DNA of 40,834 bases, from positions 1 through 40,834 of the forward strand of contig NIVC01004602.1 of NCBI GenBank assembly GCA_002269645.1, given 5' to 3'. The notes under the pieces are model-generated. The model saw only the letters and a program-made list of their open reading frames with translations. It did no database searches and was not told where the DNA came from. The position numbers were made by a program, and so were the translations under genes. The stretch comes from Macrostomum lignano. Taxonomy: Eukaryota. Positions 6,128 to 40,000 of the stretch are shown here, piece after piece (the stretch's first letter is position 1; each line of letters opens with the position of its first letter).

Positions 6128-7130
6128 ATAAAATTACAAAGTGATAATTAGCAGGGTTTGTCTGCGTCTGTCGTAAGAGTATAGTTATAATCTGTGCTTA
6201 TTAGTACCAATAAAAAAATAATTAGCCATTTCATACCATATCACATGTTTTAGAGCTACAATTAGGAGCTTTCATGCCAGTATGAAGACTTTTCTAAGAA
6301 ATTATATGGGTGCAATTACAGGCTTTAAGTAAATAGCCATTGAAGAAGACCCGTGGATTCAGTTGCGCTGACCTTCCAGGGTCCACATGCGTTGAGTCAT
6401 TGAGTCTAGCTGTAGTTTTCTTGCAGAATTGCGAACCTGTCATTTAGGTATTTTTGAGAGTTGATAGTTTTGAGACCTGAATAATGCCCCACCCTTTAGT
6501 GCACTTAAGCCGCACTGCATTGTAAATTGAGAGGCGAGGGTGAAGGAGACGACCCAGGGTAAAACCCCTGTCACTAATTCTCTGCATAACACCTATTATA
6601 CTCTGCTGCCAAAGCATTCGTAGTATGCCCTGAATTCTCTCTCTCACGCGGCCCCGCAAGGCCAGTTCACTGCTCTCTGCATGCTAGAAAGCTAACTAAC
6701 TGCAAGCGGTGCAGGGTCACGCCCGATACAAATCCGGTACAGAATCAGTTTTTAGACCTCTGGGGTGGGGTGGGGGAGGGGCGGGTGCTACAGGTCGGGC
6801 CCTCAGTAAACAATGGTTGCAGTGTTTCTCACCTTTTGGGAAGCTGTTTACTGCGGTGAGAGAAACCAGCTGCGCCGGGCTTTTATGTGGTTTTTAGGGG
6901 CTTTTTTACGGCAGAGCTAGTCTACACTTTTCTGAACTCGGTGACCTCTGCATTTGGAGCTGTGGAGCCTGTGGCTATGAGGGGGAGATTATTTAGTGCA
7001 AATGGCACGGAATCAGAGCTTGCACTTTTGCATTTGCATTTGCACTTAAAATACGACACTTTCTTCTGGCATGAAATGAGAGCAAATTTATTCGCGATTC
7101 AAACAGAGTTTTCGCGATTGATTCAAATAA

Positions 7131-9038
7131 AGTCTGTATTTGAATCTATCGCTACAGTCTGTATTTGAATCGGTCTCTACCTGGTAAGTCTGTATTTGAA
7201 CCTATCGCTACAGTCTGTATTTGAATCGGTCTCTAAGTCTGTATTTGAATCTGTCTCTAAGTCTGTATTTGAATCTATCGCTACAGTCTTTATTTGAATC
7301 GGTCTCTAAGTCTGTATTTGAATCTGTCTGTAAGACTGTATTTGAATCTGTCTCTAAGTCTGTATTTGAATCTGTCTCTAAGTCTGTATTTGAATCTGTC
7401 TCTAAGTCTGTATTTGAATCTATCGCTACAGTCTGTATTTGAATCTGTCTCTAAGTCTGTATTTGAATCTATCGCTACAGTCTGTATTTGAATCGGTTTC
7501 TAAGTCTGTATTTGAATCGGTCTCTAAGTCTGTATTTGAATCTGTCTGTAAGACTGTATTTGAATCTGTCTCTAAGTCTGTATTTGAATCTGTCTCTAAG
7601 TCTGTATTTGAATCTGTCTCTAAGTCTGTATTTGAATCTATCGCTACAGTCTGTATTTGAATCGGTTTCTAAGTCTGTATTTGAATCTGTCTCTAAGTCT
7701 GTATTTGAATCTATCGCTACAGTTTGTATTTGAATCAGTATCTAAGTCTGTATTTGAATATATCGCTACAGTCTGTATTTGAATCAGTATCTAAGTCTGT
7801 ATTTGAATCTGTCTGTAAGTCTGTATTTGAATCTGTCTGTAAGTCTGTATTTGAATCTGTCTCTAAGTCTGTATTTGAATCTGTCTGTAAGTCTGTATTT
7901 GAATCTGTCTCTAAGTCTGTATTTGAATCTATCGCTACAGTTTGTATTTGAATCAGTATCTAAGTCTGTATTTGAATCTATCGCTACAGTCTGTATTTGA
8001 ATCAGTATCTAAGTCTGTATTTGAATCTATCGCTACAGTCTGTATTTGAATCTATCGCTACAGTCTGTATTTGAATCGGTCTCTAAGTCTGTATTTGAGT
8101 CTATCGCTACAGTCTGTATTTGAATCTGTCCTCTAAATCTGTATTTGAATCTGTCTCTAAGTCTGTATTTGAATCTATCGCTACAGTCTGTATTTGAATC
8201 TGTCTCTAAGTCTGTATTTGAATCTATCGCTACAGTCTGTATTTGAATCGGTATCTAAGTCTGTATTTGAGTCTATCGCTACAGTCTGTATTTGAATCTG
8301 TCCTCAAAATCTGTATTTGAATCTGTCTGTAAGTCTGTATTTGAATCGGTCTCTAAGTCTGTATTTGAATCGGTCTCTAAGTCTGTATTTGAATCGGTCT
8401 CTAAGTCTGTATTTGAATCTGTCTCTAAGTCTGTATTTGAATCGGTCTCTAAGTCTGTATTTGAATCTGTCGCTACAGTCTGTATTTGAATCTGTCGCTA
8501 CAGTCTGTATTTGAATCTGTCGCTACAGTCTGTATTTGAATCGGTCTCTAAGTCTGTATTTGAGTCTATCGCTACAGTCTGTATTTGAATCTGTCCTCTA
8601 AATCTGTATTTGAATCTGTCTGTAAGTCTGTATTTGAATCGGTCTCTCTAAGTCTGTATTTGAATCTGTCTCTAAGTCTGTATTTGAATCTATCGCTACA
8701 GTCTGTATTTGAATCTGTCTCTAAGTCTGTATTTGAATCTATCGCTACAGTCTGTATTTGAATCTATCGCTACAGTCTGTATTTGAATCGGTATCTAAGT
8801 CTGTATTTGAGTCTATCGCTACAGTCTGTATTTGAATCTGTCCTCAAAATCTGTATTTGAATCTGTCTGTAAGTCTGTATTTGAATCGGTCTCTAAGTCT
8901 GTATTTGAATCGGTCTCTAAGTCTGTATTTGAATCGGTCTCTAAGTCTGTATTTGAATCTGTCGCTACAGTCTGTATTTGAATCTGTCGCTACAGTCTGT
9001 ATTTGAATCTGTCGCTACAGTCTGTATTTGAATCGGTC
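7131..9038. repeat. Minisatellite of mixed 24-bp (GTCTGTATTTGAATCTGTCTCTAA) and 25-bp (GTCTGTATTTGAATCTATCGCTACA) units, about 1.9 kb
   Basis: Near-invariant core TCTGTATTTGAATC with two alternating tails; rare variants recur in blocks. Confidence 0.97.
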
Positions 9039-9436
9039 TAGAGACTTGGAGACTGATTAAAAAAGACTCTAAACTAGGAGGGCAAAATTATTTCGCTAAT
9101 TGGCTCTTCTGTGCACTAGAAGTTTTGAAGCGAAAATATTGCTACTACGATTGCAAGTTGTGCCTCAATTCTCTCCCGGGGGGATTTTCGGTTCTGCATT
9201 CTGTGCGACTTTTTGGACTGACGAACTGAAGCAAGTTGGGTCGGTTTAGGGGTGGGGGAGTTTGTGGGAGACAGAAAAACAAGGAAAGTTCTGAAGGGGC
9301 AGGACAAACAGAAAGAATCCGATTGAAAAGTAGTACGCAGTACTAGAAATTAGAATAGCGTTGTTTATAATGAACGTTTTTGAGCTGAAGGAATAAATAT
9401 GAGGGATAGAGAGAGTGGGGAGAGTGTTGAGAAAGA

Positions 9437-10018
9437 GGACAGCGGAGAGGAGGAGGAGACAGCGGATAGAGGAGGAGACAGCGGATAGAGGAGGAGACAG
9501 CGGATAGAGGAGGAGACAGCGGATAGAGGAGGAGACAGCGGATAGAGGAGGAGACAGCGGATAGAGGAGGAGACAGCGGATAGAGGAGGAGACAGCGGAT
9601 AGAGGAGGAGACAGCGGATAGAGGAGGAGACAGCGGATAGAGGAGGAGACAGCGGATAGAGGAGGAGACAGCGGATAGAGGAGGAGACAGCGGATAGAGG
9701 AGGAGACAGCGGATAGAGGAGGAGACAGCGGATAGAGGAGGAGACAGTGGAGAGGAGGAGAGAGCGAAGAAGAGGAGACAGCGGATAGAGAAGGAGACAG
9801 CGGATAGAGAAGGAGACAGCGGATAGAGGAGACAGCGGAGGAGGAGACAGCGGAGAAGAAGAGGGGACAGCGGATAGAGAAGGAGACAGCGGATAAAGGA
9901 GACAGCGAAGGAGGAGACAGCGGAGAAGAAGAGGGGACAGCGGATAGAGGAGGGAGAAGAAGAGGAGAAAGCGGAGAAGAAGAGGAGACAGCGGATAGAG
10001 GAGGAGACAGCGGATAAA
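9437..10018. repeat. Purine-rich minisatellite, 19-bp unit GGAGACAGCGGATAGAGGA
   Basis: Near-perfect copies 9460-9745, degenerating to the right. Confidence 0.95.
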
Positions 10019-12456: not shown

Positions 12457-13016
12457 TGCATAAACAATTGACGAATGTACAACGTACCACAAACTTATGC
12501 AGCGCTGTGTGTGCACAGGTTTCTTGGGGGGGGGGGGGGTTGAGATTTTACGTAATGTACGCAGCTACATATACCTTGGAGATGCTGAGAGATTGTGGAG
12601 CGCTCAAATACACTGCATGGTCCGAGGCCTGTACTCGAGTACGCTGCTCCGACCTTGAGCTGGTCCCGAGAGGCTTAAAACGACCCCCAAAGGTAATAGT
12701 TTGTAAGGCTAGAGTACAAACAGAGGGCACGCTGGGATTCTTCAAGGCCATTCAATGATTTTAGTTTAACCCCCATCTTTTCGCGTGCAGCTGTTCGATC
12801 AGTTCGCTTAGATTAGTGTCACTTCTAAGTACAGTATGCACTAATAAACTACAAGACACAATGGGTCTGCAAAATGTTTTCAACAAAATTTTCTGAAGAA
12901 ACAAAGCATCTGCTTTAATAGTCCACTGACCTTGCAGTGTAACAAGCTCTCCAAAGAAGCTTCACAAAAATTGTTGCTAAGATTCTGCTTCATGAAACTT
13001 TCAACCAGATGACTAG

Positions 13017-13283
13017 AATGACCGAGACATCCCATTCTTAGAAACGCAGAGACAGACATCCCATTCCTAGAAACGCCGAGACATCCATTCCTAGAAACAC
13101 CAAGACTTCCCATTCCTAGAAACGCCAAAGCTTCCCATTTCTAGAAACGCCGAGACATCCAAATCCTAGAAACACCAAGACTTCCCATTTCTAGAAACGC
13201 AGAGGCATCCCATTCCTAGAAACGCCGCGCACGAGATATCCCATTCTTAGAAACGCCTGGAGACATCCCGTTCCTAGAAACGT
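13017..13283. repeat. Short tandem repeat, about 24-25-bp unit GAGACATCCCATTCCTAGAAACGCC, about 10 copies
   Basis: Recurrent TTCCTAGAA/TTCTTAGAA/TTTCTAGAA core. Confidence 0.9.
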
Positions 13284-13933
13284 TATCGATTGGCAACAGC
13301 TTAATCCGTAGCTGCACTTCAAGTTTGATTCTGGCGTTAAACTTTACATTACTTGGATGGCCTCTTATTCTCAAGATAATTTGTATAGCTTTACATTACG
13401 TATTAGTTAATTTTTTACTCCTATTTTTAGAAACATAAAAAATACACTGATATTCGGCAACCCAACATTAAATTTAGTTTTCTCTAAATGTTGTATTGCA
13501 TAGCTACTTGCTGAGTAGCATATCAAGCGCTTATTTCTCTATTATAGAAGGGAGTGTAAAATTGCATAGATTTAAAAAAGTAGAAAAAATACCAATGTAG
13601 CTACTAAGCTAACAAGTAGTACTGTCGAGTCACGGCTTACGCATTGCTAAATTTCAAAACTGGAAGAGAACACAGCTTATAATTATTATTTAAGCATAAA
13701 TCGCAGTTTGCTTCCAGCGCTATTATTTATCTGCTAATAACTACAAAAGAAGAAAGCGTTGAGCCATCCGAAATACTTCAAGTACTACATCCTGACAAAA
13801 TCAATGGAGTCAATCTTTCGCTTATACACGGTTTAGGCTGTTGAAATAAATATAAGCTATGATATCAAAGCTGAATTTTCTCTTAAAAACATGCTTAGAA
13901 TGTCGCTGGCAAAAGCTGTCCAAAACCAAAGCC

Positions 13934-15591: not shown

Positions 15592-16176
15592 TTTGGCTTG
15601 TGGCTTGTGCAAAGAGCAGCTATATAGAAACTGAATGCTAGTAGCATAATTCAGCCCCTTTTATGCTCGCGCAACCCAGGTTATTTTCCATTCTTCTTTT
15701 TTCGATTGTCCGAGCTTCTTCCAGTTGTAGCCCTCTAAAACTTTTAGAGGGTAAATCTAAAATTAGCTGCATTGTACTTCTGCCCACCTAAAACAGGTTT
15801 TCAAGCCTCTTTTTCTATCGCAGCTTTGCTAGACAACCTCCTCGGTTCTCTACATAGGTATAAGCGCTCAGCGACTAGAGAAGAGTTTCGTCATTTTGTG
15901 TTACTCACCTCACTCAGAGTTGAAATTATGAGACAACACAGGTCTGGCTACGAATTTGAGAACCTGCAAAGCACTATTTATCAGTTGTGTTCTCTTAAAG
16001 ATTTCTTGCAGGGACTTGCTTTTTAGAAATATAGAATCTAGAAGGAAACCCTGAAAATTGCTGGCGCGGCCTTCGGCAGCTCTGAGGCAATTCTGCTCAT
16101 TCCGGTGACTCCTGAGCACAAACAAGGGCGCCGATACTGTATGCAGGCACGCACTCATGCACTACACACGCTCACA

Positions 16177-16892
16177 AAAACAACAACAACAACAACAACA
16201 AAATACGCGTTCAGCGTCACACGGCGCGCCTCAGGGCCGGGTCGCGAATGAACGCCACTCCGCCAGCCGAATCCGGGGTGCCGGCGTCAGCCAGCAGGCA
16301 GTCGATGAGTTCGGGCCTGCCTATGCGATATGCGTTAGCAGCAGCACCTCCTGCACCGGCTGTGCGCAGTACGACTTTGGCGCGGATGATGTGGCCTGCC
16401 AGCTGGAGTCGCCGTCGGCGCAACAGGTCGCTTGGACGGACTAGGCCGTCGCGGCAATACAAAGCCGCGTTGGTCACTCGCTCGTAGCCGATCTTGAAGG
16501 CGCCGCGTCAAGGCGCTCGCTGTCCGAGTGCTCGAGCGACTCCGTCAGCGTCAAGGTCTCTGCGCTGTACAGCAGGACGGTCTCGATCACCGCCTGGAAC
16601 AACACCGCCCTCTTGGCGGTCAGGTAAGGCCTCGGACTGCAGGACTGCCCTCACAGAACGAAAGGCAGCCCAGGCAAGCCCGCGGCGACGCCGCAAATCC
16701 TCGCGGACGCCGGGAACCAGACCGCCGAGGTAGACGAACTGCTGACAACGCGGAAGCTCTGTCGCCTGTCCATCAGCACCTCGGCACGAAATCGCAGCCT
16801 CGATGTCGTCCGGCACGCAGAGCACGACGGTCTTCTGAGTGTTGACCACCAGGCCGACACTCGCAGCAACAGCAACTGGGTTGTCCAGCTCC
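16177..16892 (-). mobile_element. 5'-truncated, frameshifted RTE-type non-LTR retrotransposon with (TTG)n tail and 10-bp TSD
   Basis: RT C-terminal motifs GLVVNTQKT, QQFVYLG, LFQAVIETVLLYSAET and RRRRLQLAGHII in shifting frames; tail 16177-16202; direct repeat CACGCTCACA at 16167-16176 and 16893-16902. Confidence 0.9.
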
Positions 16893-17548
16893 CACGCTCA
16901 CACAGGGTGTACAGTAGCTTTCTGAATCGCACAGCAACCACCTGACCAATTTTTATGCGCAAAGGCCAAATAAATTCGCTGTCCGAGTGGCCTCTGCCCC
17001 AACCTGGCCTCCACCCCGCCGAACGATCTTCTAATTTAGTTGTCCATGATGCCAAGCAACCCTGTGCGTCAGTATACCACAGTAAAGCAGTTCTACAGCT
17101 AAGACTAAGCAATTATTTTCACTATTCCAACCCATTACGCGAATCGAACAGTAGAGGGCATCTCAGGCTAAGGTTAATCGTTATAGTGCATTTTATCTGC
17201 AACCGGTTATGCGCATTTCAATTTAGCCCTGAAACTCATACCCTGCTGTATGGCCCTGTGAGTCTAAATCTGACTCTGCATTCGCTATTATTCCAAGCTT
17301 GAAGAGCGAGCTCATTCTGTGCTCATTCTGTGCGATAAAGCTGCGTTGAAAGGGTGTCTAAAAATAGTTTGTGCTGAAGCCAGCTTAGCCATCTTTAATG
17401 CTGCATATGACGCATTTGCGCGTAACCTCCAAATCTTATAGACACTGAACGGTATAGGCAGTTTCTTATCTTTTAAACAGGCTTCAGTTTCTGATTGGAA
17501 AGATTCACGAACTAATGAGTGCACTAATGAGAAGGCACAACACCACGA

Positions 17549-18047
<499 letters not shown>

Positions 18048-19121
18048 TTTGCAGGCAGAATAAGGAAACAGTTAGCATGGAACATCTATTCCCTAAAAAG
18101 ATTTCTGACCTTTAAGAAGATGCTGAGGGTTTGAAAAAGACATTATTTGGATAAAACCATTTGGTCTTTCTTTTGTCAAGAGTTACAAGAAACTGTGAAG
18201 AAAGCAGTTGATGATTTGATAGGTTGCGATGTGATGGTTTTTTAGCAATTATCCAATTCTCCAAAAGTAGTCTATAGACAACCTTCTTTAGCCAGATCCT
18301 TTGTAGCAGATTAAGTATATTGAACCAGAGCATAAAAGGAGATTGCGCAATGTCCACTCTTATCTTGCCCACCTTTTCAAAACTTCTACAGTTAACGATT
18401 GGACAGTTGAACATAAAGTCTAGCAAGTTATTATTGAGAAGAAAAAAAATCAAAACTAAATTGAGCTAACTCTATTCCAGATTACAATCGGTCTGAACCA
18501 CCTGTAAATTGGTTTGAGTAGGTTTGAGTAATCTTTGACCTGCGGAGTTGCTTGCGGCAGCGTTAACTTGCCTTTATGCAACTGTAGGTGAGAGCAATAT
18601 TGCATTTGCATATAAATATGAGCCACTTCTATTTTTTGCTTGCTACTGTTCTGCAAAAACCTTTTTGTTCTCATCTTGCATCTCTCTCAGCTTTCTGAAA
18701 ACGACAATGCAGTGTAGGTGTTTTTTGCTCGGGCTTGATTTGTCAAAATAATTAAATAGCTGCAGCCATGGCCTGTGTATTTTCCATTGGAATTAATAAC
18801 GTACGCTAAACAATCCAGCAAACCGTACCTCCTGCCATCCTCTTTTCATTCCTTACCCTCACACTCTGCAAAGCCCTCTTGTACGAGCTACTAGCCTGTG
18901 TGTTCAAAATTAACTAGGGTGTACACCGGTCACAGTGTACACTCTGCCCTAACCGTACAAGGAGAATGTACTCAAAGTATACGCCTGCCCAACAGCTTGG
19001 GGTAACTGAAAAGAAAAACCTTTACACGCTAAAGAGCTTTTGCAAAACAGAAAACACTTCTGCGAACCCTGAGGCTGAAAGAGTGCTTTGCTACTAGCGA
19101 AGAAACTAGAAGTAAACAAAA

Positions 19122-20752
19122 ATGCTTCGCCAGATTCTGCCGTCGCAACTGGTGAGTCTAGCGGACTCCGTTTTCTCCCAATCGGACAGCAGCTACAAGA
19201 AGGCCATCGCAACTGCCGCGATACCCGCCGCTCTCGGGGCCTACGTCCTCTACTACTGGCGACAAGGACGCGACCTCCCTCCCGGTCCTGTAGGCCTGCC
19301 TCTCATTGGCCGTCTGCCATGGACCGATCCGAAGAACTTGCACCTCACGATGCAGAAAGTGGCAGAGAAGTACGGCGACATTACTTCGTTCTACCTTGGC
19401 TCGCGCCTGCTCATTGTGCTCAACTCTTACCCGATGATGAAGGAGATGCTGGACGACTACAACTTTGCTGGTAGACCGAGACTGCGTCTGTTCTTAAAAC
19501 TGACCCGCGACTGCGGCATCATCTTCACGGAGGGAGACATGTGGAGCCAGCATCGTCGATTGAGTCTGCGAACTCTGCGAGACTTCGGCTTTGCTAGAGC
19601 GCAAACTGTAGAGATGGTCGACGATCAACTGGACTCCATCTTCCAGACGCTTGATGAGGCCGCGACGTCGGTCACACCGATGGAGGTGCTCGGCACTTTC
19701 ATTCTCGCCTCCAACTCGATCATCACTGAGATGACACTCGGTCACCGATTTGAGCGAAACGATCCCGAGTTTCAGAAGGTCAACAAGCTCATCAAGAAAC
19801 TACTTGAAGAGGGCATTGTTCAAACGGCAAGCGCTTTGTTCCCAGCTGTTGAACGATTCATCGTACTGTTCCCGCTATCAAGCAGCGTCGTTCACGATGT
19901 TGAATATCTGCACTCGTTCATACGGAAAGAGATCCAACAGCGTGAGAAGGTGATGGTCGACGAAAGCACAGAACCGGAATGTCTATGCGATGTCTACATC
20001 CACGTGAGTGAATTAAGGCTTCACTATTTCTACAGTCGTATAAATAACAGCAATCCCTTTGATTAACTTTCTCACAGGAAAAGCGCAAGGCTGAGAAGGC
20101 TGGCGACTTTGAGACGTTCAAGGAGTTCCAGCTCATACGCGTAATCCTTGAGTTTTTCCTGGCCGGCACTGACACGACCGCCCGATCGATAGAATGGCTG
20201 CTGCTCTACATGGCCTTCTATCCGGAGGTGCAGGACCGAGTCCAGAACGAGCTCGACTCCGTAATCGGTCAGTCGAGGCGTCCACGGATGCAGGACAGGA
20301 CAGAACTGCACTACACCAGCGCTGTCATCGACGAGACCTACAGAAAGGCCTCCCTCGCTGCCATCGGGGTGTTCCACCGAGCCGTTGAGGAAACCCATTT
20401 CCACGGCTACCGGATCCCATCGGATGCTTTCATCATTCCGAACGTGTACGGCGTCCACCACCGAGTCGAGTACTGGGAGAGACCGAACGAGTTCTACCCT
20501 GAGCACTTCCTCGACAACGAAGGTCGCTACCGGAGCAGTCCGTACCTCATCCCGTTCCTGATTGGTAGGCGTTCTTGCGTTGGCGAGTCTCTGGCGCGAA
20601 TGGAGATTGTCCTGTTCTTCACGGCCATCATGCAGCGGTACCGGGTGCGGCCGGCCCCGGAGAGTGCGGCAAAGAAGGATGACATCCTGTCTGGTTGGAT
20701 GGGATCTTTGCGTATTCCAGGTGAATACCGTCTGATTTTCGACCGCCGTTAG
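19122..20752 (+). CDS. Cytochrome P450, clan 2, copy 4; intact; exons 19122-20003 and 20078-20752 (518 aa)
   Basis: ATG 19122; DLPPGP, WSQHR, AGTDTT, ETYR, FLIGRRSCVG; 74-bp phase-0 intron GTGAGT...ACAG. Confidence 0.95.
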
Positions 20753-21463
20753 GTCTCCTGATCGCCAGGTTCTGGTTCTGAACTGTGCGTACATATCCAT
20801 TGTTTTCAATTTAAAATCTGACGTAACGAGATCAGTTTGAAACTTCAATTTTAGCTACACTTAGCACATTGGATTGAATTTACGTTGTTATTTCTCACAG
20901 TGGAAAAATTTCACTGCTGTATTCTTTTTTTCAAGCCTACTTTTTCCAGAAAGCAGTTTTTTTATTGTAGCTATCACAGTATTTGAATATGTTCTTAGAA
21001 TCTTAGCCACTCATATCACAGTGTACATCTTTTTGTGAAATAAAATAAATACGAGTGTTATAAAAACAAGTAGAGTAAACCTTTTTGTCTTTAAAATTTG
21101 GTACTTATTACTTATGAAAAGTTTTACTCAGAACTTTTGGCTAATTTTAGAGCACGATTATCACAAGACCAAAAACAACTCAACGAGGCCACAAAGCAGA
21201 CAGACGCTAGAACGATAAGGGTAAATCAAGTAATAGGTGTTACAGTATAGCTAGTTGCTATTTAGCTACTATTCCAACTGAGCGAACCACTCGCTAAGCG
21301 CTTTGCAGGTGCACGTACCATACATATAAGGACTGGAATATCTTGGAGATATTTAGAACGATTATAATTAAGCAAATTCTGGGTAAAAATGTAATTTTTA
21401 TCATGTGCAGGGCCAAATGAAAACAACAGAAGCTACTTTTGTTCTAAAAATATCAATCAAGGT

Positions 21464-23093
21464 CTATCGACGGCTCATAATCAACTGGTATCGCCCCGGC
21501 ATCCGCAAAATTCCAAGACGACCAGACGGAATGTCGTCCTTCTTCTTGCCGCACTTTCCAGCTCCGGCCGCACCCGGTACCGCTGCATGATGGCCGTGAA
21601 GAACAGGACAATCTCCATTCGCGCCAGAGACTCGCCAACGCAAGAGCGCCGACCAATCAGGAACGGGATGAGGTACGGACTGCTCCGGTAGCGACCTTCG
21701 TCGTCGAGAAAGTGCTCAGGGTAGAACTCGTTCGGTCTCTCCCAGTACTCGGCTCGGTGGTGGACGCCGTACACCAGCGGAAGGATCACAGCATCGCTGG
21801 GGATCCGGTAGCCGTGGAAATGGGTTTCCTCAACGGCTCGGTGGAACAGACCACAGGCTACCAGCGAAGCTTTTCTGTAGGTCTCGTCGATGACAGCGCT
21901 GGTGTAGTGCAGTTCTGTCCTGTCCTGCATCCGTGGACGCCTCGACTGACCGATTACGGAGTCGAGCTCGTTCTGGACTCGGTCCTGCACCTCCGGATAG
22001 AAGGCCATGTAGAGCAGCAGCCACTCCATCGATCGGGCGGTCGTGTCAGTGCCGGCCAGGAAGAACTCGAAGCACACTCGGATGAGCTGGAAATCCTTGA
22101 ACGTCTCAAAGTCGCCAGCCTTCTCAGCCTTGCGCTTTTCCTAATAAGTAGTCATGGTGGCAATCAAATCGTTAAAGTTTCAGCTGTTAAAAAATAATTT
22201 GTGTTTTTGTGCTCCTGTCTGAATTCGAGTTTTTACCTGGATATATACATCGTAGAGACACTCGGGTTCCGTACTTTCATCCACCATTATCTTCTCACGC
22301 TGTTGGATCCCTTTCCGTATGAACGAGTGCAGGTACTCTAGATTCTGAACAACGCTGCTTGATAGACCAAACAGCTCACCAAATCTGTCAATGATCGGAA
22401 ACGAGACACTTGCTGATTCGGTTATGCCGTCGTCAGGTAGTTTTTTCATCAATGCATTGACTTTCAAGAACTCGGGATCGTTTCGCTCAAATCGGTGACC
22501 GAGTGTCATCTCAGTGATGATGGAGTTGGAGGCGAGAATGAAAGTGCCGAGCACCTCCATCGGTGTGACCGACGTCGCGGCCTCATCAAGCGTCTGGAAG
22601 ATGGAGTCCAGTTGATCGTCGACCATCTCTACAGTTTGCGCTCCAGCAAAGCCGAAGTCTCGCAGAGTTCGCAGACTTCCGTGAAGATGATGCCGCAGTC
22701 GCGGGTCAGCTGTAAGAATAGACGCAGTCTCGGTCTACCAGCAAAGTTGTAGTCTACCAGCATCTCCTTCATCATCGGGTACGAGTTGAGCACAATGAGC
22801 AGGCGCGAGCCAAGGTAGAACGAAGTAATGTCGCCGTACTTCTCTGCCACTTTCTGCATCGTGAGGTGCAAGTTCTTCGGATCGGTCCATGGCAGACGGC
22901 CAATGAGAGGCAGGCCTACAGGACCGGGAGGGAGGTCGCGTCCTTGTCGCCATTAGCCATTAGTAGAGGACGTAGGCCCCGAGAGCGGCGGGAATCGCGG
23001 CAGTTGCGATGGCCTTCTTGTAGCTGCTGTCCGATTGGGAGAAACGGAGTCCGCTAGACTCGTCAGTTGCGACGGCAGAATCTGTCGAAGCAT
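21464..23093 (-). pseudogene. Cytochrome P450 copy 5, pseudogene; exons 23093-22237 and 22140-21464
   Basis: Relative to copy 4: -1 T at about 23043; TAC>TAA plus a 7-bp duplication (TAATGGC) at about 22947-22962; a 31-bp deletion at about 22680 removing WSQHR; +2 nt at about 21545. Intron 22141-22236 keeps GT-AG. Confidence 0.92.
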
Positions 23094-23865
23094 ATTTTGC
23101 TAGGTTTTTTTAAATCAACGTTACAGCAAGCTTGGCGCTTATAACTCGTATAGCTGCATGTACAGACATACGTTAAAGTAAGCTTGTGTGAATGACCGAC
23201 CAACCCTCTGCACAAAAGCGTACACTTCGCTCGCTCTTCGCTGGGATGCTCTATTCGTAGCATGGTTTAGAGTATAGCAGTTTTTTCTTGAGAAATTCTC
23301 ATCTGCGCTTTTGTTGTTTCTGTTGAAGGGCGTATATACAGCATGTACTTGCATATTCGTTTTTTTAACCTCGTAGCGGGATAACTGGCTGTGCAGTGGA
23401 AATTTCTATGTGCTTTACAGACATCGACTAAGCTGCCATTCGCAAGTGCGTTACGCTGCAATTAGACAAGCAATACGTACGTAGCGCAGAGTTTTAAAAG
23501 CTTTGTTCCATGCAAGACGACTCAAGTAAGAGGAGTAAAAAAATCATTATTGCATTTGATTTATGTATGTAGGAGGCAGGCCCAATGTTCATCTTTTATG
23601 TCTAGACTTTCAAATATAGCCCATACAGTTGGTATTATAAAGCTTTTTCATTTAGAAAATTAGGATTGTGAGTTCATTTAATATCCTACGTACAATCGTA
23701 CATGTCCTACATATGTGCCTAAAAACCGTGACAACGCGGCTCGATCATTGTTGGTTTTACGTTCGAATCTTTTTTCTTTCCTAATTGTTCAGTTGTTGAA
23801 TTAACGAACGCAGAAACAATATAGATAATTATCCGGGCGCTCAGTGGCACCAAAAGAGGGCTTGG

Positions 23866-23982
23866 CCAATAGGAGGGCGGCTCGTATATTTATGCACGCG
23901 GGGAAGGAAAGTTCTAGAAAGACCGGGAGAGGAAACTTCTGGAACAATGCGTAAACAAGTCCTGCTGTGGAAGTTTCTAGAA
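23866..23982 (-). promoter_or_regulatory. Heat-shock promoter-like module: three perfect HSEs, a FOXO-type site, and TATA-like, GC-like and CCAAT elements
   Basis: GAAagTTCtaGAA 23907-23919, GAAacTTCtgGAA 23932-23944, GAAgtTTCtaGAA 23970-23982; GTAAACAA 23951-23958; CATAAATATA (minus) 23894-23885; GGGCGG 23875-23880; CCAAT 23866-23870. Minus orientation is inferred from the HSE-then-TATA order. Confidence 0.75.
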
Positions 23983-24227
23983 ACCCTGTCCCCGAACTAT
24001 CCCTTCGCATAGCATGCCTTTGCAATACACAACGCTAATCTTAGCTAAATGACTGAAATAAAAAGTGTAACAGCTGAATACAGGACAGTGCTTGTACATG
24101 TTACAGTATACAGTTATCAAGCTGCTCACCATGGACTTGTATATGTCGATATAACCGTTCTTTTCATTTTTAAATTTAAAGTACATGGCCACGTATAGCA
24201 ATACGAAGCGTACATGTACCTCTGCAA

Positions 24228-24536
24228 GGCTACGAGCGAGTGATCAACGCGCGGCTTTGTATCACCGCGCCGGCCTGGTCCGTCCAAGCGACCTGTTGCG
24301 CCGTCGGCGACTCCAGCTGGCAGGCCACATCATCCACGCCGAGTCGTACTGCCCAGAGCCGGTGCAGGAGGTGCTGCTGGCCCTACTGGCGGGGCAAGGC
24401 CCGCGCACTTGGCGTTTAATCGTCGACTGCATGCCTGCTGTGGCTGACGCCGGCTGCCCTGGATTCGGCCCTGAGGGGCGCCCTGTGACACTGAACTCGT
24501 ATTCTGTTGTTGTTGTTGTTGTCACTGTTGTTGTCA
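24228..24536 (+). mobile_element. Short 5'-truncated RTE-type LINE 3' end with (TGT)n tail
   Basis: Homologous to the 16.2-kb element (DLLRRRRLQLAGHIIHAESYCPEPVQEVLL; 3' end GGCCCTGAGG...TGTGACACTGAACTCGTATT); tail TGTTGTTGTTGTTGTTGT. No clear TSD. Confidence 0.85.
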
Positions 24537-26164
24537 ATAATGCAGCAGCGAAGTTTGATAATTACAGCTAACTTTAATCATAATACGTACTTTAAAAATG
24601 CCATGGCCAATTGTTTTCTTGAAAAAAGCACAGGGTTCTTAACTTTCAGTATTTGAAAAACAGTATCTTTCGATTGCTATGATGATGAATAAGTTCGTCC
24701 AATTGGTCGCAGGGTGCAAACAGAGATCGACGACTTTGTTCTTTTTGAGCGATACCCATGCATGCTTGGGGGCCATATAGAGAGATATATACGAGTATTA
24801 TAACCCAAACTTTATCTTTATTGAAAATTTCAATTTTTTTTTACTCATCCCAAACGGAGCTATATATAGTTCGTTCATTCCAAAGATATGCTACGCCTAG
24901 CTTTGATGTGCTTATTTGATTCTGAAAATTTGACAAACCATGCAGAGAGCAGCATATATAGGCCTCTAAATCTTTTATCAATTGATAATTAAGTAAATGC
25001 TTTTATAATGGTTTCATCTTAAAGCAAAATTTCTTTTTGAATGGTTACATTTTGTTCATACATGTAGTTGTTTATGTACTTCAATAACCATGTATTTATA
25101 TATATTTGCTCGCCAGGATTTCTTTGCTCTTTGCTTAAACTTACAGTATCTACTTTATACAATTTTTATCAAAACATCAAATGATACTAAGATTCCATTT
25201 CATTACTAACATTTATCCTGCGCTTTAAAGCTTTTTGCTGTCGCACATTTGTTTTCATGCAGTTTTATGTACCGGTCGCAAAAATTAAGTTTTGCGCAAA
25301 TTCAAACTTAATAATTTCGTAGAAAAGGTTCTCTAAAATTACGAATATAACGTTCAGCAAACAAAAATCGTCTCGCCAAAATCTTAGTTTAACTTTCGAA
25401 AATGCATTTGTGTAAATCAACTCACTTTTTTCGTATTGGTAATCAGGCTGTCAATCCTGTCATGCCTAAGCTATTTATTACTAGTACTACTAAGAATAAG
25501 AAGTTAATAATTATTAAATTCATGTATCCTTTCAAGTGATCGCAATTCATAGATAAAGGCAGGGTAAATTAGCCTTTACATAGGTAATGCATCTGTTATC
25601 TGTATACCGTATATAATATTGTTTCCATTCAACCCACTTTGGTGAAGAGATTTGGCAAACGTCAATTACAACGAAAAATACTGTTGCACTCTAACTAAAA
25701 CTAAAAGTTCGCCTTTGCCAAAGGCGAAATGGACTGCATCCAAATATTTTTTGCATTTCATTCATATTATAGCGGCTGCATTCCTGCAATTTAATTCAAT
25801 TCCATTCTGCATTCATTTCATTAGGTTCATTCATCATTAAATACTAAACCATTGCTTAAAATTTATGTTTGGACTTTAGAGTCAGAAATTTTGTTTACCC
25901 TGGGGGCTGGGGCCAGATGCCCAGATAAAGAACTAAGCTAATGGCTGCTGGCCATTAGCTTAAGGGGGAAATAGAAGAGAGAAAAGAGAAGAAACAAAAA
26001 AGATAAAAATCCCTAGACAAGGGCCTAGTCTAGAAAATGGGAATCATTTTCTATTTAGAATAGGGCCTATTGTAAATATTTTTGGTGCTATTTACCTAGT
26101 ACTATATAATAGTATTAGCATAATTATTTATATAGTAACTGAAAAAAAATTATAAATATTTCTA

Positions 26165-30006: not shown

Positions 30007-32025
30007 ATGCTATCGCGAGGTGGTAAAAAACACCTTGGTTCAGGCCTTGGCGGCGTGAGCATCGGCATTGATGGTCGCTACATTCGCAAAGAATTGCCAA
30101 CAACATTTCAACAGCCGCCAGTGCCAGATTCTGCACTGATCAGTTGCCATGGTAACAGGCAGCGGCCTCTGATGCCTATTGTGCCATTGAATCATGTGAC
30201 TGCTGCGTCAGCATCAACCGCAGCCGGTGAAGATCTCCTGCCTCCCGGCTGGTCCATCAACTGGACAATTCGAGGCAGGAAGTACTACATTGACCACACT
30301 AACCGGACAACATCCTGGAGCCACCCGCTGGCTAGGGAGTCTCTGCCCAGCGGCTGGGACCGGATTGAAAGTCAAGAGAAAGGCATCTACTATGTCAAGT
30401 GAGGATTCTTTCCTCTGTATCAGCCGGGATTCTTTACGATGACTGGCCTGTCTAGCAACTGAGGATCTAAGGGGCTGGCCCAGGATTGAGGATCTGGGAG
30501 GCCTGCCTAGCAACTGAGGATCTGGGTCCTGGTAGGCTGGCCCAGCAATTGAGGATCTGGGAGGCTGGCCCAGCAGCTGAGGATCTGGGAGGCTGGCCTA
30601 GCAATTGAGGATCTGGGAGGCTGGCCCAGCAGCTGAGGATCTGGGAGGCTGGCCCAGCAGCTGAGGATCTGGGAGGCTGGCCCAGCAGCTGAGGATCTGG
30701 GAGGCTGGCCCAGCAACCGAGGATCTGGGAGACTGGCACAATAACTGAGGATCTGAGAGGCTGGCCCAGCAACTGAGGATCTGGGAGGGCGGACCACCAA
30801 GTGCTCATCTGGGAGGGTGACAATGGCCCAGTCTGCAGGTCAGAAACCCAAACTTCAGAAGTGATGTCATTTACTCTCCCACTCCTCACCACTGTTGAAC
30901 AGTCGAGTGGCCAGAACGGTGCAGTACCATCACCCCGGCCTGCCATTAAACGGTATATCAGTACCCACAGTAGCTCAGCAGAAGCAGCAAATGGCCGGGC
31001 CAAAACAGGCCTCCTGGTTGCTAGGCAGCGATGGAAATTCTCCTAGGCGACCGCCGCTGCCCGTTAGCGAGCCAGTGGAACCCGCAACTGTCACTGTAGA
31101 GTCATCTGGAGATCAAGCTGCAATTAAAAAGACAGGTAATTTGAATAAAACAATCACTTTTTATTAGGCAGGTACACATGCTTCAGTTTAGTTTTTAAGA
31201 ATAATTTCACCACTTTTCATGTTTCTTAGAAATATTCCGTACCTATCCATGTTTCTTAGAAACGATCTAAATTCTTATACTTTTCTCAAGATCTGCTAGA
31301 TTTTAGCGTTTCTTAAAATTTTCCAAGATTAGATTGTTTTTTGTTAGAATTATCAATGAATATTTGTGTTTCTTAGAATAGATGTTAAATTTTCTTAAAA
31401 ATCGTTTAAAATAATTAGTTTCTTAGAATCATCCTTAAGTAGTCATTTAGTAATAGCGCTCTAAAGTAAGCTGCTTTTCTCAGGAATTGCCAAATTTTGA
31501 GCGTTTCTTAAAAAATCCCTAGAACGATGGTTTTTTTTAGAATCGTCCAAAATGTTTCGCGCTTCTTAGAACCGCATTACGACAGACTACATCACATAGT
31601 TATGCATCATGCGAACGCGAACAAACTCACTTGGTTTCTTAGAATGGTATTCAAAATTGTTGGTTTTTGTTAGAATCGGCTCATTATTGTGCTTCTTGGA
31701 ATTGGTGTTAAATTGTTGCAGTTTCTAAGAAGGCTTTTCTAAGAATCAGCTTAATATATTCTAAGAAACCTTTCCAGACCTGGAGTCGTTTTTATCCGTA
31801 TACGCCAGAGCGCCAGCAGCCTACGACAATCGAATTAATTGGGGCGCATTCTCGTCTGACGAATTGGAACGCGCATCGGACCTGCTTGGCCGAATGGCTA
31901 AACAGGAGACCGAGTCCATTGTGGCGGCCTACGAGCGCTACAGGGTGGCGCTGATTGCCAGAAAGCGGGCAATGGAAGACTGCGGCGGATGTGCAGACTC
32001 GCATCGTTACTCGTCGCTGCTCTGA
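30007..32025 (+). CDS. sav: Salvador / WW45 (Hippo pathway scaffold); exons 30007-30398, 30903-31135, 31778-32025 (290 aa)
   Basis: N-terminal MLSR..GRYIRKE (SAV1 has MLSRK..GKYVKKE). WW1 [30 protein letters not shown]. Atypical WW2 [18 protein letters not shown]|[12 protein letters not shown] spans intron 1. [37 protein letters not shown]. Both introns are GT-AG with matching phases (2 and 1). Confidence 0.93.
30455..30787. repeat. GC-rich minisatellite, 28-bp unit CAGCTGAGGATCTGGGAGGCTGGCCCAG, in sav intron 1
   Basis: About 12 units; period 28 (30551, 30579). Confidence 0.95.
31215..31770. repeat. Degenerate tandem repeat (period about 29 bp) with TTCTTAGAA core, in sav intron 2
   Basis: GTTTCTTAGAA and variants recur at about 31222, 31251, 31369, 31419, 31562 and 31635; the reverse form TTCTAAGAA occurs at about 31723, 31737 and 31759. 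Confidence 0.7.
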
Positions 32026-32269
32026 TTACAATATTGTCCGCCCGGTATTTTCAGTTGCGCTCGTAAATTTCAGCTGGTTACAATAACAGCTGTTCTTTTT
32101 TATCGAGTTACTTTGTAAGCTTTCTATAAATATCTGCCTTAACTTACATTCCTTGGCGCTTTTGTCTTAAATATCGATCCAAAAGTCTCCCTAAGTCATA
32201 TATATCCCTAAATATTTCTAAATCCTACTTTATAAGGTATAAGGTATAATTATAGATCTTTCCAAATTC

Positions 32270-32860
32270 CACACATTTTAATTTCCCTAAACTCTACCCC
32301 ATAAATCTCTCAAAATTTCACATTTAAATCTCCCGAAATTTTACCCATATATCTCCCCAAGTTCACCTCATAAATCTCTCCAAACTTCACACCATAAATT
32401 TCTCCAAACTTCACACCATAAATTTCTCCAAACTTCACACCATAAATCTTCCCAAATTCCAACCATAAATGTCTCCAAATTTCCCCCCCATAAATCTCCC
32501 CAAATTCCAACCATAAATCTCCCCAAATTCCAACCATAAATGTCCCCAAATTTCCCCCCCCCATAAATCTCCCCAAATTCCAACCATAAATCTCCCCAAA
32601 TTCCAACCATAAATCTCCCCAAATTTCCACCCATAAATCTCCCCAAATTCCAACCATAAATCCCCCCAAATTCCAACCATAAATGTCCCCAAATTTCCCC
32701 CCATAAATCTCCCCAAATTCCAACCATAAATCTCCCCAAATTCCAACCATAAATGTCCCCAAATTTCATCCAATAAATCTCCCCTAAACTTCACCCATAA
32801 ATCTCCCCAAATTTCACCCCATAAATTTCCCTGAACTCTACCCCATTAAACTCCCCAAAT
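32270..32860. repeat. C-rich minisatellite, about 22-23-bp unit CCATAAATCTCCCCAAATTCCAA
   Basis: Tandem units downstream of sav. Confidence 0.93.
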
Positions 32861-33880: not shown

Positions 33881-34085
33881 TCAGTTGGGGCGACAGAAAT
33901 GAAGGACACTGAGAAAATATTTAAAAGTTCAGTAAGATTTTGAGCAAAATTGTAAATGCGTTTGATTTCAATGCTTCAATTTATGTAAGGCCAAAAATTA
34001 TAACTCAATTTGGGTTCCACGCGGTACAAAAGGGATACCAAAGTGCCAGAGATACTGAAGTTGTGGCTCCCGGATTGGAAAGCCA

Positions 34086-37000
34086 ATGGAGGCTTGCGAT
34101 GCTGAGCTGCTGCATCAGCTAGGCAAACTGTTGGCCTTCCTAGGCGGCGAGGTTCGGCTCAGTGTAGGCGATTCGAGTGTGAGTAAGGTTGAGTCAGTGT
34201 GAGTAAGGCTGAGAGTGAGAAGGATGACTGTGAGTAAGGCTGGGTCAGTGTGAGTAAGGCTGAGAGTGAGAAGGATGACTGTGAGTAAGGCTGGGTCAGT
34301 GTGAGTAAGGCTGAGAGTGAGAAGAATGACTGTGACTAAGGTTGAGTCAGTGTGAGTAAGGCTGAGAGTGAGAAGGATGACTGAGTAAGGCTGGGTCAGT
34401 GTGAGTAAGGCTGAGAGTGAGAAGGATGACTGTGAGTAAGGCTGGGTCAGTGTGAGTAAGGCTGAGAGTGAGAAGAATGACTGTGAGTAAGGCTGAGTCA
34501 GTGTGAGTAAGGCTGAGAGTGAGAAGGATGACTGTGAGTAAGGCTGGGTCAGTGTGAGTAAGGCTGAGAGTGAGAAGGATGACTGTGAGTAAGGCTGGGT
34601 CAGTGTGAGTAAGGCTGAGAGTGAGAAGAATGACTGTGAGTAAGGCTGGGTCAGTGTGAGTAAGGCTGAGAGTGAGAAGGATGACTGTGAGTAAGGCTGG
34701 GTCAGTGTGAGTAAGGCTGAGAGTGAGAAGAATGACTGTGAGTAAGGCTGGGTCAGTGTGAGTAAGGCTGAGAGTGAGAAGGATGACTGTGAGTAAGGCT
34801 GGGTCAGTGTGACTAAGGCTGAGAGTGAGAAGAATGACTGTGAGTAAGGCTGAGTGTCTGTCTTAGAGTCTGTCTGTCTGTCTGTCTCTCTGTCTGTCCG
34901 TCTATCTGTCTATCTGTCTGTCTGTCTGTCTGTCTGCTTGCCTGCCTGCCTGTCCGCTAGTCAATTATCCACTAAACACCCACCAACCAACCTCAGGGCC
35001 TTCTTCTCTCGGCGAAGCGAGCGCATTTAAATTTGATTCGCCCACCGGACAGTAAGCAGCAACAGTCGCCGTCTTCACCGCCCCTGATTGACTGGGCGCA
35101 GGTGCACTTCCCCGAGTCCTCCCTGACAGCAGTCTCGTCCTGGGATTCGCCATCGCATCCAATCGTCTGGCTCGCCGGGCTCGTTCGCCGACTCGCCGTT
35201 GGTTGCGCGAAAGATCCCTGCCTAGCCGAAGAGTGCCTCAATCCGCTGTGCGATGCCGTCTCGACTAAGATCAGGCAAATGGGCAGTGCGGATGCTACGG
35301 GTAGCCTGGCTCAACTAATTGTCTGGTTGGCCACCTTGGAGATTGATGATGATGATGACGCAATCGAACGGCAGAGATTAACTGTAGCAGCTGGCGAAGC
35401 TGCGCGCCGGAGGCTGCTAGAGATTCGATCGGAATTGAGTCGGTCCTCAAGGCTTGAGCTGTACCTGGCTCTGTGTTGGACTCGCCATAACTGCCTGCCA
35501 ACAGCTGCTGTGAATGTAACCGATTGTTGCCTGCCTCAGTCGGCTATTGACCTCGATGCTGTCTGGCCTGCAGCTGCTCGGCTCACTGCTCAGCAGAGAC
35601 GTCTGCTGGCCTGCTCTGGGCTGAAGGACCGGCGGGACCGACTGGCTGAACTGGCCGAGTTGAGCTGGGCGGATGGCTGCCGGCTGGATCGGCTGGCTGG
35701 GGTGAGGATCGGGCTGATGGGCTTTCGGGGAAGCTTTACAGGAATGTTTTAGGATATGGGATTTTTAGGGATATGGGATTTTTAGGGATATGGGATTTTT
35801 AGGGATATGGGATTTTTAGGGATATAGGATTTGTAGGGATATGGGATTTTTAGGGATATGGGATTTTTAGGGATATGGGATTTTTAGGGATATGGGATTT
35901 TTAGGGATATGGGATTTTTAGGGATATGGGATTTTTAGGGATTTGTGATTTCAGAGATATGAGAATTTTAGGGTATGAGACTTAGGGATATGGGATTTTT
36001 AGGGATATGGGATTTTTAGGGATATAGGATTTTTAGGGATTTGTGATTCTCAGAGATATAGGATTTTTAGGGTATGAGATTTTTAAGGATATGGGATTGT
36101 TAGGGATGTAGGATTTTTTTAGTGATATGGGAATTTTAGGATCTAAGCGTATGATATGAGGTTTTATGAGACATTGACTTTTAAAGTATATAGGATTTTA
36201 TGGATATTGATTGAATTTTTTAGATATGGGATTTTTAAGGATATAGAATTTTTTGGATATGGGATTTTTAGGGGTGTGGGATTTTTAGGGTGTGGGATTT
36301 TTAGGGATGTGGGATTTTTAGGGATATGGGATTTTTAAGAATATGGGATTTTTAGTGATATAGGATTTTAGGTTATATTATTTCTAGGGATATGAGTTTT
36401 TTAAAGATGGGATTTTAAAGGTATGGAATTTTAAAGGATATGATATTTTAGGGATATGGGATTTTATGAGATATTGGATTTTTTAAGTATATGAGATTTT
36501 TAGGGATATGAGATCTATAAAGTTTGAGACCTATAGTACGAAGTTTATAAAAGAGTGGTTCCTATACTACATTAAATTTAGAAATTTATTGATTCAGCAG
36601 TATGAGATGAGGATCCATCTGAGGATGAGGAGTCAATTGTCTGGGATTTTGATAATCTTAGATACTTGCATTCTAAGATCTGGGGATTTCCTTCGACTTG
36701 GCAGGAAACAGCCTTTGCTCTACTTAAAGACGGCGCTCCCGACTCGATTCTGTCTCGGTTATTCAACTTTGGCGAGGGCGAGGGCGAGGGCGACCATTAC
36801 TTCGCCGAGGCGGCCCAACGCGCCATCGATAGTCAGTGGCGCCGATTGGGCGCCTTCGCTAGCGTGCAGCGCGCCGTTGACTGGGCTCTGCGGCGGCGAG
36901 ACTGCGGCGACTCCGCCGATGGTCTGGACGGCGAATCGACGAGTCGGCGAAAGCGACTTCGAGACGATCGGCTGGTCAGGGCGAGGGATTACTGCTCGGC

Positions 37001-40000
37001 GCTTCAGGGACTGTTTAGGGATTGCGGGTGAGACTTTGGATTCGAGTTTTGCTTGATAAATTTTGGTTTTTGTCTCAGTTTAGATTTTATTAGAATCACT
37101 TTAGATCTTATTAGGATCAGTTTAGATTCTGTTAGAATCATTTTAGGTTCCATTAGGATCATTTTAGATTCTATTATGATCAGTTTTAGATTCTATTAGG
37201 ATCAGTTTTAGATTTTATTAGGATCAGTTTTAGATTCTATTATGATCAGTTTTAGATTCTATTAGGATCAGTTTTAGATTCTATTAGGATCAGTTTTAGA
37301 TTTTATTAGGATCAGTTTATATTCTGTTAGGATCAGTTTAGATTCTATTAGGATCAGTTTAGATTCTATTAGGATCAGTTTAGATTCTATTAGAATCAGT
37401 TTTGTTTCTTTTAGGATCAGTTTAGATTCTATTAGAATCAGTTTTGTTTCTTTTAGGATCAGTTTTAGATTCTATTATGATCAGTTTTAGATTCTATTAG
37501 GATCAGTTTTAGATTCTATTAGGATCAGTTTTAGATTTTATTAGGATCAGTTTATATTCTGTTAGGATCAGTTTAGATTCTATTAGGATCAGTTTAGATT
37601 CTATTAGGATCAGTTTAGATTCTATTAGAATCAGTTTTGTTTCTTTTAGGATCAGTTTAGATTCTATTAGGATCAGTTTTGGTTCTTTTAGGATCAGTTT
37701 AGATTCTATCTCGTACTAAAATCAGTTTAGATTCTATTAGGATCAATTTAGATTCGGTTAGCATCAATTTAGATTCGGTTAGGATCAATTTAGATTCGTT
37801 TAGGATCAGTTTAGATTCTTTTAGGATCAGTTTAGATTCTATCTCGTACTAAAATCAATTTAGATTTGGTTAGGATCAATTTAGATTCGGTTAGGATCAA
37901 TTTAGATTTGGTTAGGATCAATTTAGATTCGTTTAGGATCAGCTTAGCATTTCACCAAGACCAGTTTAGTTACTGCTAAGATAGAGTTCAGTTATGCTCT
38001 ACTCGAACTGTTTCCAGTTTTGCACCTTTCAAAACTACCAGCACTATCACTCCGCAGCATCAGTCTCAGCCGCGATCAAGAGTCCCGCCTAGTCGGAGGC
38101 GCCGGCCTTTCCAGCCTTCTCAGCCAGCTCGCCTCCGTCGCTGCTCCCGCCCTCCTGCCCGACTGTCGCCTCGCTGTCGACTCCTTGACTCGCGCCGTCG
38201 CCGCCGCCGCCGCCGCTGCCGCTTCGACCTCCGACGAAGTCCCCGCCGCTGAAATAGTCGATCGCGAAGTGTCGCTGCTCCGCTGCGCCCAAGCCGTCGC
38301 TTGCATCGTCCGCGCGCTCAACGTCGACGTGGCAGCGTCGGCGGCGTCGGCTACTGCCGTGTCGGAGGCGGACTATGACGCCGAGTCGAACCCGATCGAC
38401 GCCATGGCCGCCCTGGTGTCGCTGGCCGGCCAGCTGGCTAGCGGGGTGTCCGACTTGCTTCTTCGGGGCGAATTGCTTCGTCGACTAATTCAACTGCTGT
38501 TCCTCCGGCGAAGGCAGCTGCGAGCGTTCAATCGGCTTGCGCGAGAGTCAAGCGTCGATAGCGGAATCGGCGGTGCCGGTAGCGTCGCTGGTGTCGGCGG
38601 CGCGGGTGTCGACCACGGCAACGAGCTGGTAGCGTCCGACAATTTTGTCCGGCTTCATCTTGTTGAGATGCGTCACCTTGTAGCGGCGTTGAGGCAGCAG
38701 TTGGCGGCGGTTAAAACCGGACACTTGTCCGAATTCAGCCCCGAAGACTTGGCCGAACTTCGCAGTCTGGTCAATGGGCTGGAGTCTAGGCTGGCCGACC
38801 TGCAGTGGCGTCAGGAGCTGATCGCCTCGCTGCCCGAGCAGCCCGCCTTTGCCGCGGTTGAGCTGCCCGCCGCCGCTTTTGCTGGGGAAGACAGCAGGTG
38901 AGGCTTCCCGCACTGTCTTCCTACAGATTTCCTGAGAATCCCACACTCCATTCCCAAAATCCCACACTCCCTTTCCCAAATCCCACACCCCCTTTCCCAA
39001 ATTCCACACTCCCTTCCCCAAATCTCACACTTCCTTCCCCAAATCCCACACTCCCTTTCCCAAATCCAAACTCCCCCAAATCCCACACTCCCTTCCCCAA
39101 ATCCCACACTCCCCAAATCCCACACTTCCTTTCCCAAATCCACACTCCCTTCCCCAAATCCCACACTCCCTTTCCCAAATCCCACACTCCCTTTCCCAAA
39201 TCCCACACTCCTTCCCCAAATCCCACACTCCTTTCCCAAATCCCACACTCCCTTTCCCAAATCCCACACTCTCTTTCCCAAATCCCACACTCCCTTCCCC
39301 AAATCCCACACTCCCTTCCCCAAATCCCACACTCTCTTTCCCAAATCCCACACTCCCTTCCCAAATCCCACACTCCCTTCCCCAAATCCCACACTCTCTT
39401 TCCCAAATCCCACACTCCCTTCCCCAAATCCCACACTCCCTTCCCCAAATCCCACACTCCCTTCCCCAAATCCCTCGCTCCCTTTCCCAAATGCTACACT
39501 CCTTTGAATCCCACATTTTTTCAAATCCCACACTGTTTCTTTCAAATAATTTGACACCATTTGACTATAGTTTCAAATCGCAAACTATTCCTTGGAATAA
39601 TGTACCAAAGTGCCACATCTGTTTCACATCAACACTCCCTATAACGCAACAACGAAACATTCCCAGACACCGCAGGCCCGCAAACTGTCAGCCTCGGCTT
39701 CATCAAAATCCGCACCAGTCGGCAGCGCCACCCAGTCTGGCAGCGAAGATTCACAACAACTGGGCACCGCTGCTCAGACTCCGCCTCATAATCTTCATCA
39801 GCATCAAAAGTTCCGCCGCCGATTAGTGCACTACCTGGATTGCCCGGGACCCAGCCTGTTGGGTCTGTGCCTGATTCGCGGCAATCTGCAAGGCGCCTCT
39901 CAGACGGTGAAAATCTACAATCTTCAGCACAGCAGGCTGTGCGCTGAGCTGCACTGGCAGGAGCTGTTCCGTTCGAGACTGCTTCAACTGCGCACTCTTA

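Follow-up and report, generated by a model that had tools for sequence, protein, structure and literature searches.

The cluster of heat-shock elements (HSEs) at positions 23907-23982 of the 40.8-kb window, by which we mean the whole stretch of Macrostomum lignano DNA analysed, almost certainly belongs to a solo LTR of the retrotransposon Mlig-id115|Mag, whose U3 promoter it forms. The feature is a further copy of a published, experimentally characterised kind of element and is in this sense already known. The sequence-only reading had described an orphan heat-shock promoter and offered four origins for it: a stress-inducible CYP promoter, a stranded promoter of a lost hsp gene, a stress-induced non-coding RNA, or an HSE cassette carried by a mobile element. 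Only the last of these holds, the cassette being identified as a solo LTR of the heat-activated Mlig-id115|Mag by its alignment, its exact ends and the target-site duplication (TSD) around it. Because the solo LTR is without the transposon interior, the promoter appears orphaned. The features of the locus are as follows.

24035 to 24039: upstream copy of the TSD, CTAAT on the plus strand and ATTAG on the minus strand, as read from the sequence
23786 to 24034, minus strand: solo LTR of Mlig-id115|Mag (= Mlig_LTR-RT_ID206), 249 bp, from the end-to-end alignment with the LTR of plasmid KU60
23970 to 23982, minus strand: distal HSE, reading TTCTAGAAACTTC then C on the minus strand and matching the published form nTTCnaGAAnnTTCc
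23951 to 23958, plus strand: GTAAACAA, a forkhead/DAF-16-type 8-mer, also in the cloned LTR
23932 to 23944, minus strand: middle HSE, reading TTCCAGAAGTTTC then C on the minus strand and matching the published form
23907 to 23919, minus strand: proximal HSE, reading TTCTAGAACTTTC then C on the minus strand and matching the published form
23885 to 23894, minus strand: TATA-like box CATAAATATA, read from 23894 to 23885, the same in the cloned LTR
23781 to 23785: downstream copy of the TSD, CTAAT on the plus strand and ATTAG on the minus strand, abutting the ...GAACA end of the LTR
23677 to 23682, minus strand: ATTAAA hexamer, a putative transcript stop and the only AATAAA or ATTAAA on this strand from the TATA box to where CYP copy 5 ends

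The three perfect HSEs that had been noticed within 76 bp are the sole exact matches to GAAnnTTCnnGAA in the window (23907-23919, 23932-23944 and 23970-23982). Over the entire window and both strands 0.70 such matches are expected, and the chance of three falling inside 76 bp, estimated from this rate, is about 1e-6 per window, which bears out the earlier judgement that the trio is unlikely to be accidental. Read on the minus strand, all three take exactly the form nTTCnaGAAnnTTCc; each of them consists of three units, the fourth unit being absent. When the whole window was scanned for HSEs under relaxed settings, the sites outside the cluster were all isolated and carried one mismatch, and the observation that no such cluster lies upstream of CYP copies 1-4 stands. 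The TATA box reported past the last HSE on the minus strand is the TATA-like CATAAATATA, with a gap of 12 nt between it and the proximal HSE. As had been stated, the first minus-strand ATG, at 23748, opens a frame of 9 codons (MIEPRCHGF*). This short frame and the A-rich leader-like tract described along with it are both present, but they are located in the flanking DNA outside the LTR and are not parts of the promoter unit.

The alignment of the minus strand from 24034 to 23786 with the LTR promoter in KU60 spans all 249 bp, end to end. The reference LTR is the sequence given under the name ID206 in the preprint supplement, taken from machine-read PDF text with errors. Against two such machine-read, error-bearing versions of the reference, the identity is 92.5-93% (233-235 matches); it is 94.9% when only the 13 differences common to both versions are counted. 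None of these 13 shared differences, which are substitutions or indels, falls in an HSE core or in the TATA box. Family membership is defined by at least 80% identity over at least 80% of the LTR, and the window copy shows 92.5-95% identity over 100% of the 249 bp. It also has, within the LTR, the three canonical HSEs nTTCnaGAAnnTTCc with a TATA box downstream of them. The Mag-clade gag-pol internal region that belongs to the family definition is absent, as the TSD abuts the LTR. It should be mentioned that the clustering by which the authors delimited families additionally demanded an alignment of 400 bp, which is beyond the reach of any solo LTR (PMC12801592). The window copy thus shares with the Mlig-id115|Mag LTR about 95% identity over the full 249 bp, three nTTCnaGAAnnTTCc HSEs, a TATA box, the word GTAAACAA and, but for the first base, ends of the TGT...ACA type; it differs from the family in being a solo LTR without gag-pol, in its 13 substitutions or indels and in a mutated first base.

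A close examination of the two ends shows that the LTR in the window runs CGT...ACA and the reference TGT...ACA, a single T-to-C change at the first base. On the minus strand the LTR is preceded by ...GATTAG and followed by ATTAG GAAAG..., so that a direct repeat of 5 bp, without mismatch, encloses it; the chance probability of a flanking ATTAG match like this is about 1e-3. It is noted that the downstream end of the LTR was set partly by the TG...CA rule together with the duplicated 5-mer, the cloned fragment continuing with ATG and the window with ATT. Since the downstream copy of the TSD abuts the ...GAACA end, the interior of the retroelement is missing after it. In all six frames of 23094-24250, Pfam at E<=10 detected neither gag nor pol, the only match being a sub-threshold one to a DUF, and no tRNA-complementary primer-binding site starting with TGG is present after the LTR. 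The qPCR primers of the published study for the interior of the element find no site within 3 mismatches. A search for repeats within the window, together with blastn at word size 7 using the LTR and its two flanks as queries, detected neither a second LTR copy nor terminal inverted repeats, and Rfam had no match in 23000-24400 at E<=1. Considering that the TSD directly flanks the LTR and that a primer-binding site, gag and pol are absent behind it, we conclude that the element is a solo LTR.

Other accounts of the cluster fare poorly beside this one. An accidental gathering of HSE-like words can be dismissed: apart from the shortness of the 13-mers nothing speaks for it, and against it stand three sites in 76 bp where 0.7 are expected window-wide, as well as 249 bp that match a published element. 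It is very improbable that the LTR stands at the 5' end of a full-length element or of a truncated one. In favour of that reading one may point to the single LTR visible in a window that holds other repeats, and to the cloned fragment, which reads ...ACAATG where the window has ...ACAATT. Yet the 5-mer before the LTR is repeated immediately past its ACA end, the TGG-starting tRNA-complementary site does not follow, and neither a gag/pol signal in the 690 bp that separate it from the CYP pseudogene nor a second LTR in 40 kb is found. Still less credible is a host promoter of the hsp70/small-hsp type, stranded after the loss of its gene, for example through the inverted CYP duplication described below. 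Clustered trimeric HSEs near a TATA box do resemble hsp promoters. However, the 249 bp match a transposon LTR from the first to the last base and are bounded by a 5-bp TSD, and the six-frame Pfam scan of 23094-24250 at E<=10 detected no remnant of HSP70, HSP20 or DnaJ. The earlier remark that no heat-shock gene lies behind the cluster is borne out by the same scan, and the idea of a promoter left over from a lost hsp gene is contradicted by it and by the exact LTR ends and TSD. Host hsp70/hsp20 promoters (e.g. Mlig-hsp20, plasmid KU49) resemble the window element in having trimeric HSEs directly before a TATA box, and the heat induction of the Mlig-id115|Mag family is of the same order as theirs; the window element differs in that no hsp coding sequence lies downstream and in that LTR ends and a TSD mark its bounds.

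A 10-mer, TCAACAACAG, is common to the hsp20 leader before the ATG (...CCAGTCAACAACAGCATG), which is known from cloning primers, and to the 3' end of the cloned LTR (...AATTCAACAACAGAACA). In the window copy one base of this 10-mer differs. The sharing hints weakly at a host hsp gene as the possible source of the LTR promoter, and chance would explain it just as well. We rejected an argument for host-promoter capture from TCAACAACAG, the 10-mer being too short and its complexity too low.

Heat activation of the family has been published. In M. lignano, canonical HSEs occur in the LTRs of six LTR retrotransposon families, four of which are strongly heat-induced (Ustyantsev et al., Mob DNA 2025, PMC12801592). 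Mlig-id115|Mag, listed as Mlig_LTR-RT_ID206 in the preprint (10.1101/2024.12.18.629116), is a Ty3 retrotransposon of the Mag clade and the strongest-induced family; it is represented by 19 LTR-bearing (near-full-length) genome copies, with three HSEs per LTR (PMC12801592). After 2 h at 37 C its transcripts show a log2FC of 8.11 (FDR 5e-182), an increase of about 270-fold that is on par with host hsp genes (PMC12801592). The LTR was cloned into plasmid KU60, and in injected eggs the heat induction of the reporter was lost once all original HSEs nTTCnaGAAnnTTCc had been mutated; a stable line with the intact LTR reporter was likewise heat-responsive (PMC12801592). The isolated LTR is sufficient for heat induction, and the HSEs are necessary for it (PMC12801592). 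HSF is the presumed factor, direct binding being noted by the authors as not shown (PMC12801592).

We propose that a Mlig-id115|Mag retrotransposon (Ty3/Mag clade) inserted into the M. lignano genome, and that recombination between its two LTRs then removed the internal genes and left one LTR behind. In LTRs of the family, three trimeric HSEs stand about 12-90 nt ahead of a TATA box. Upon heat shock, heat-shock factor would presumably bind the HSEs, transcription by RNA polymerase II would start in the LTR, and the transposon would thereby exploit the heat-shock response of its host. Since neither the TATA box nor any of the three HSEs is damaged, the solo LTR described here is, judging from its sequence, probably still heat-responsive. 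Transcription is predicted to start near 23855-23865, about 25-30 nt downstream of the TATA box, and a transcript from about 23860 would cover the final 75 nt of the LTR and continue in the flanking DNA. There it would end near the ATTAAA at 23682 or else go on in the direction of CYP pseudogene copy 5; with the sole poly(A)-type hexamer at 23682, a short non-coding RNA or a pseudogene read-through would be expected. Non-coding RNA may be read out from the LTR into the flank on heat shock.

The neighbouring genes were examined as well. Five CYP2-like copies, each with two exons and one short intron, form a tandem or inverted array in the window.

2310 to 626, minus strand: CYP copy 1
12367 to 10511, minus strand: CYP copy 2
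15612 to 13934, minus strand: CYP copy 3
19122 to 20752, plus strand: CYP copy 4
23093 to 21481, minus strand: CYP copy 5, an inverted and frameshifted duplicate of copy 4 that shares the orientation of the LTR

Clear frameshifts are confined to copy 5: its exon 1 has a 1-bp deletion and a 7-bp insertion, and its ORFs are broken. Its ATG at 23093 lies 693 bp beyond the LTR end. Copies 1-4 have long open exons with 51-82% identity per exon to a 519-aa Logan homologue (P0001), and they may be intact genes rather than pseudogenes. The best named match of copy 4 is the M. lignano protein UniRef A0A1I8F872 (P0002), which proved to be a frameshifted model of copy 1 (626-2329), with identical stretches of 46 and 34 residues; other parts of the protein match alternative frames of the copy 1 DNA. 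This mosaic probably stems from indel errors in an older assembly, so that the entry is unreliable. The identical stretches place the window in M. lignano or in an extremely near relative. Copies 4 and 5 constitute a tail-to-tail inverted duplication (19112-23103; 84-98% identical) around a spacer of about 730 bp. The homology between them ends about 10 bp upstream of each ATG, and the LTR region has no counterpart at copy 4; the HSE region is therefore outside the CYP duplication unit. It is noted that the breakpoint of this duplication is oddly precise, at the start of the coding sequence.

These observations bear on two ways in which the cluster could belong to the CYP genes. As to origin, the earlier suggestion of a stress-inducible CYP promoter finds no support: the CYP unit stops some 10 bp short of the ATG, the reading frame of copy 5 is disrupted by frameshifts, and heat upregulates none of the annotated P450s. 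The last point follows from Table S2 of the preprint, in which the first entry with 'P450' is row one of the down-regulated sheet (10.1101/2024.12.18.629116), and it applies to annotated transcripts, which the table covers and among which an unannotated pseudogene transcript would escape. That row holds the CYP2-like transcript MligTCv3c-8751.2, with a log2FC of -6.0 after heat shock (10.1101/2024.12.18.629116). The other way, whatever the origin of the solo LTR, is its co-option as a heat-inducible promoter or enhancer of the adjacent CYP gene or genes. Such a co-option would suit an LTR in the same orientation as copy 5 and 693 bp upstream of its ATG, with intact HSEs and TATA box and one intervening poly(A)-type hexamer, and it has a parallel in two solo LTRs of heat-upregulated HSE-containing families that are found within 2 kb of mildly upregulated genes (PMC12801592). 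The broken ORFs of copy 5, the lack of any heat-upregulated P450 among the annotated ones and the decrease of one CYP2-like gene argue against it, and we consider it unlikely, though less so than a misread 5' LTR or a lost hsp gene. Equally doubtful is a domesticated LTR that would act as a heat-switch, either by giving rise to a chimeric LTR-CYP pseudogene RNA or as an enhancer modulating the CYP2-like cluster. If true, such a heat-switch might contribute to the strong heat-induced changes of P450 expression in M. lignano.

The solo LTR also contains the DAF-16/FOXO word that had been pointed out between the second and third HSE, GTAAACAA at 23951-23958. The presence of this word is by itself weak evidence for a forkhead site, because it occurs 5 times in the window compared to 1.5 expected. 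One of its copies directly precedes the ATG of CYP copy 4. It is common to the window LTR and the cloned LTR, and these copies, being 95% alike, are too similar to show constraint. The analogy to HSF1 and FOXO in C. elegans was based on one 8-mer, and the explanation by a solo LTR works without it.

Several other features of the window should be mentioned. At 13030-13290, 660-920 bp upstream of the ATG of CYP copy 2, about ten tandem 25-bp units contain TTCCTAGAA (TTCnnnGAA, STAT/GAS-like) or TTTCTAGAAAC (a two-unit HSE-like palindrome), and two one-mismatch HSEs are located near this array at 12956-13001. A LINE-type retroelement is present as two fragments, one 5'-truncated at about 24220-24540 (plus strand) and the other at 16174-17112 (minus strand), with the related stretch at 16174-16469; their 3' ends are 86-93% alike. 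The ORF for the C-terminal part of the LINE reverse transcriptase has a tail of the '...RRRRLQLAGHIIH...' type. The fragment at 24220-24540 is situated 185 bp upstream of the solo LTR. An ORF at 30007-30402 (plus strand) contains two WW-domain-like motifs and appears to resemble Salvador/SAV1 of the Hippo pathway. Minisatellites are exceptionally dense, with units of 8, 17, 19, 21, 23-25, 28 and 51 bp, some of which yield long spurious ORFs; this density agrees with the repeat-rich genome of M. lignano. They are found at the following positions.

2725 to 3700: minisatellite
5163 to 6228: minisatellite
7139 to 9040: minisatellite
9374 to 9900: minisatellite
17425 to 18100: minisatellite
30473 to 30864: minisatellite
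32239 to 32844: minisatellite
34078 to 34957: minisatellite
35698 to 36550: minisatellite
37046 to 37990: minisatellite
38866 to 39543: minisatellite

We have compared the solo LTR to other mobile elements that carry HSEs. ONSEN (ATCOPIA78), a Ty1/copia element of Arabidopsis, is heat-activated through LTR HSEs that are bound by heat-shock factor, and its solo as well as its full-length LTRs can make neighbouring DNA heat-responsive. Both ONSEN and Mlig-id115|Mag are LTR retrotransposons with HSEs in the LTR, but they belong to different superfamilies, live in hosts of different kingdoms and have no sequence similarity. The HSEs common to ONSEN and the M. lignano LTRs were read by the authors as a convergent acquisition (PMC12801592). 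In C. elegans, Helitron1_CE is a mobile element that spreads HSE clusters and is activated via HSF-1 (cited in PMC12801592). It is likewise an HSE-carrying mobile element; in contrast to the solo LTR, it is a rolling-circle DNA transposon, without an LTR or a promoter unit of TATA plus R/U5.

Transposons that carry HSEs scatter ready-made heat-inducible promoters, and this published mechanism resolves the puzzle of a heat-shock promoter with no gene behind it. In the annotation of the M. lignano genome, an HSE cluster should first be compared with the six LTR families that bear HSEs, and only then be called a host promoter. Any intact solo LTR of this kind may give rise to heat-induced read-out transcripts in the neighbourhood of host genes, in this case of the CYP2-like cluster.
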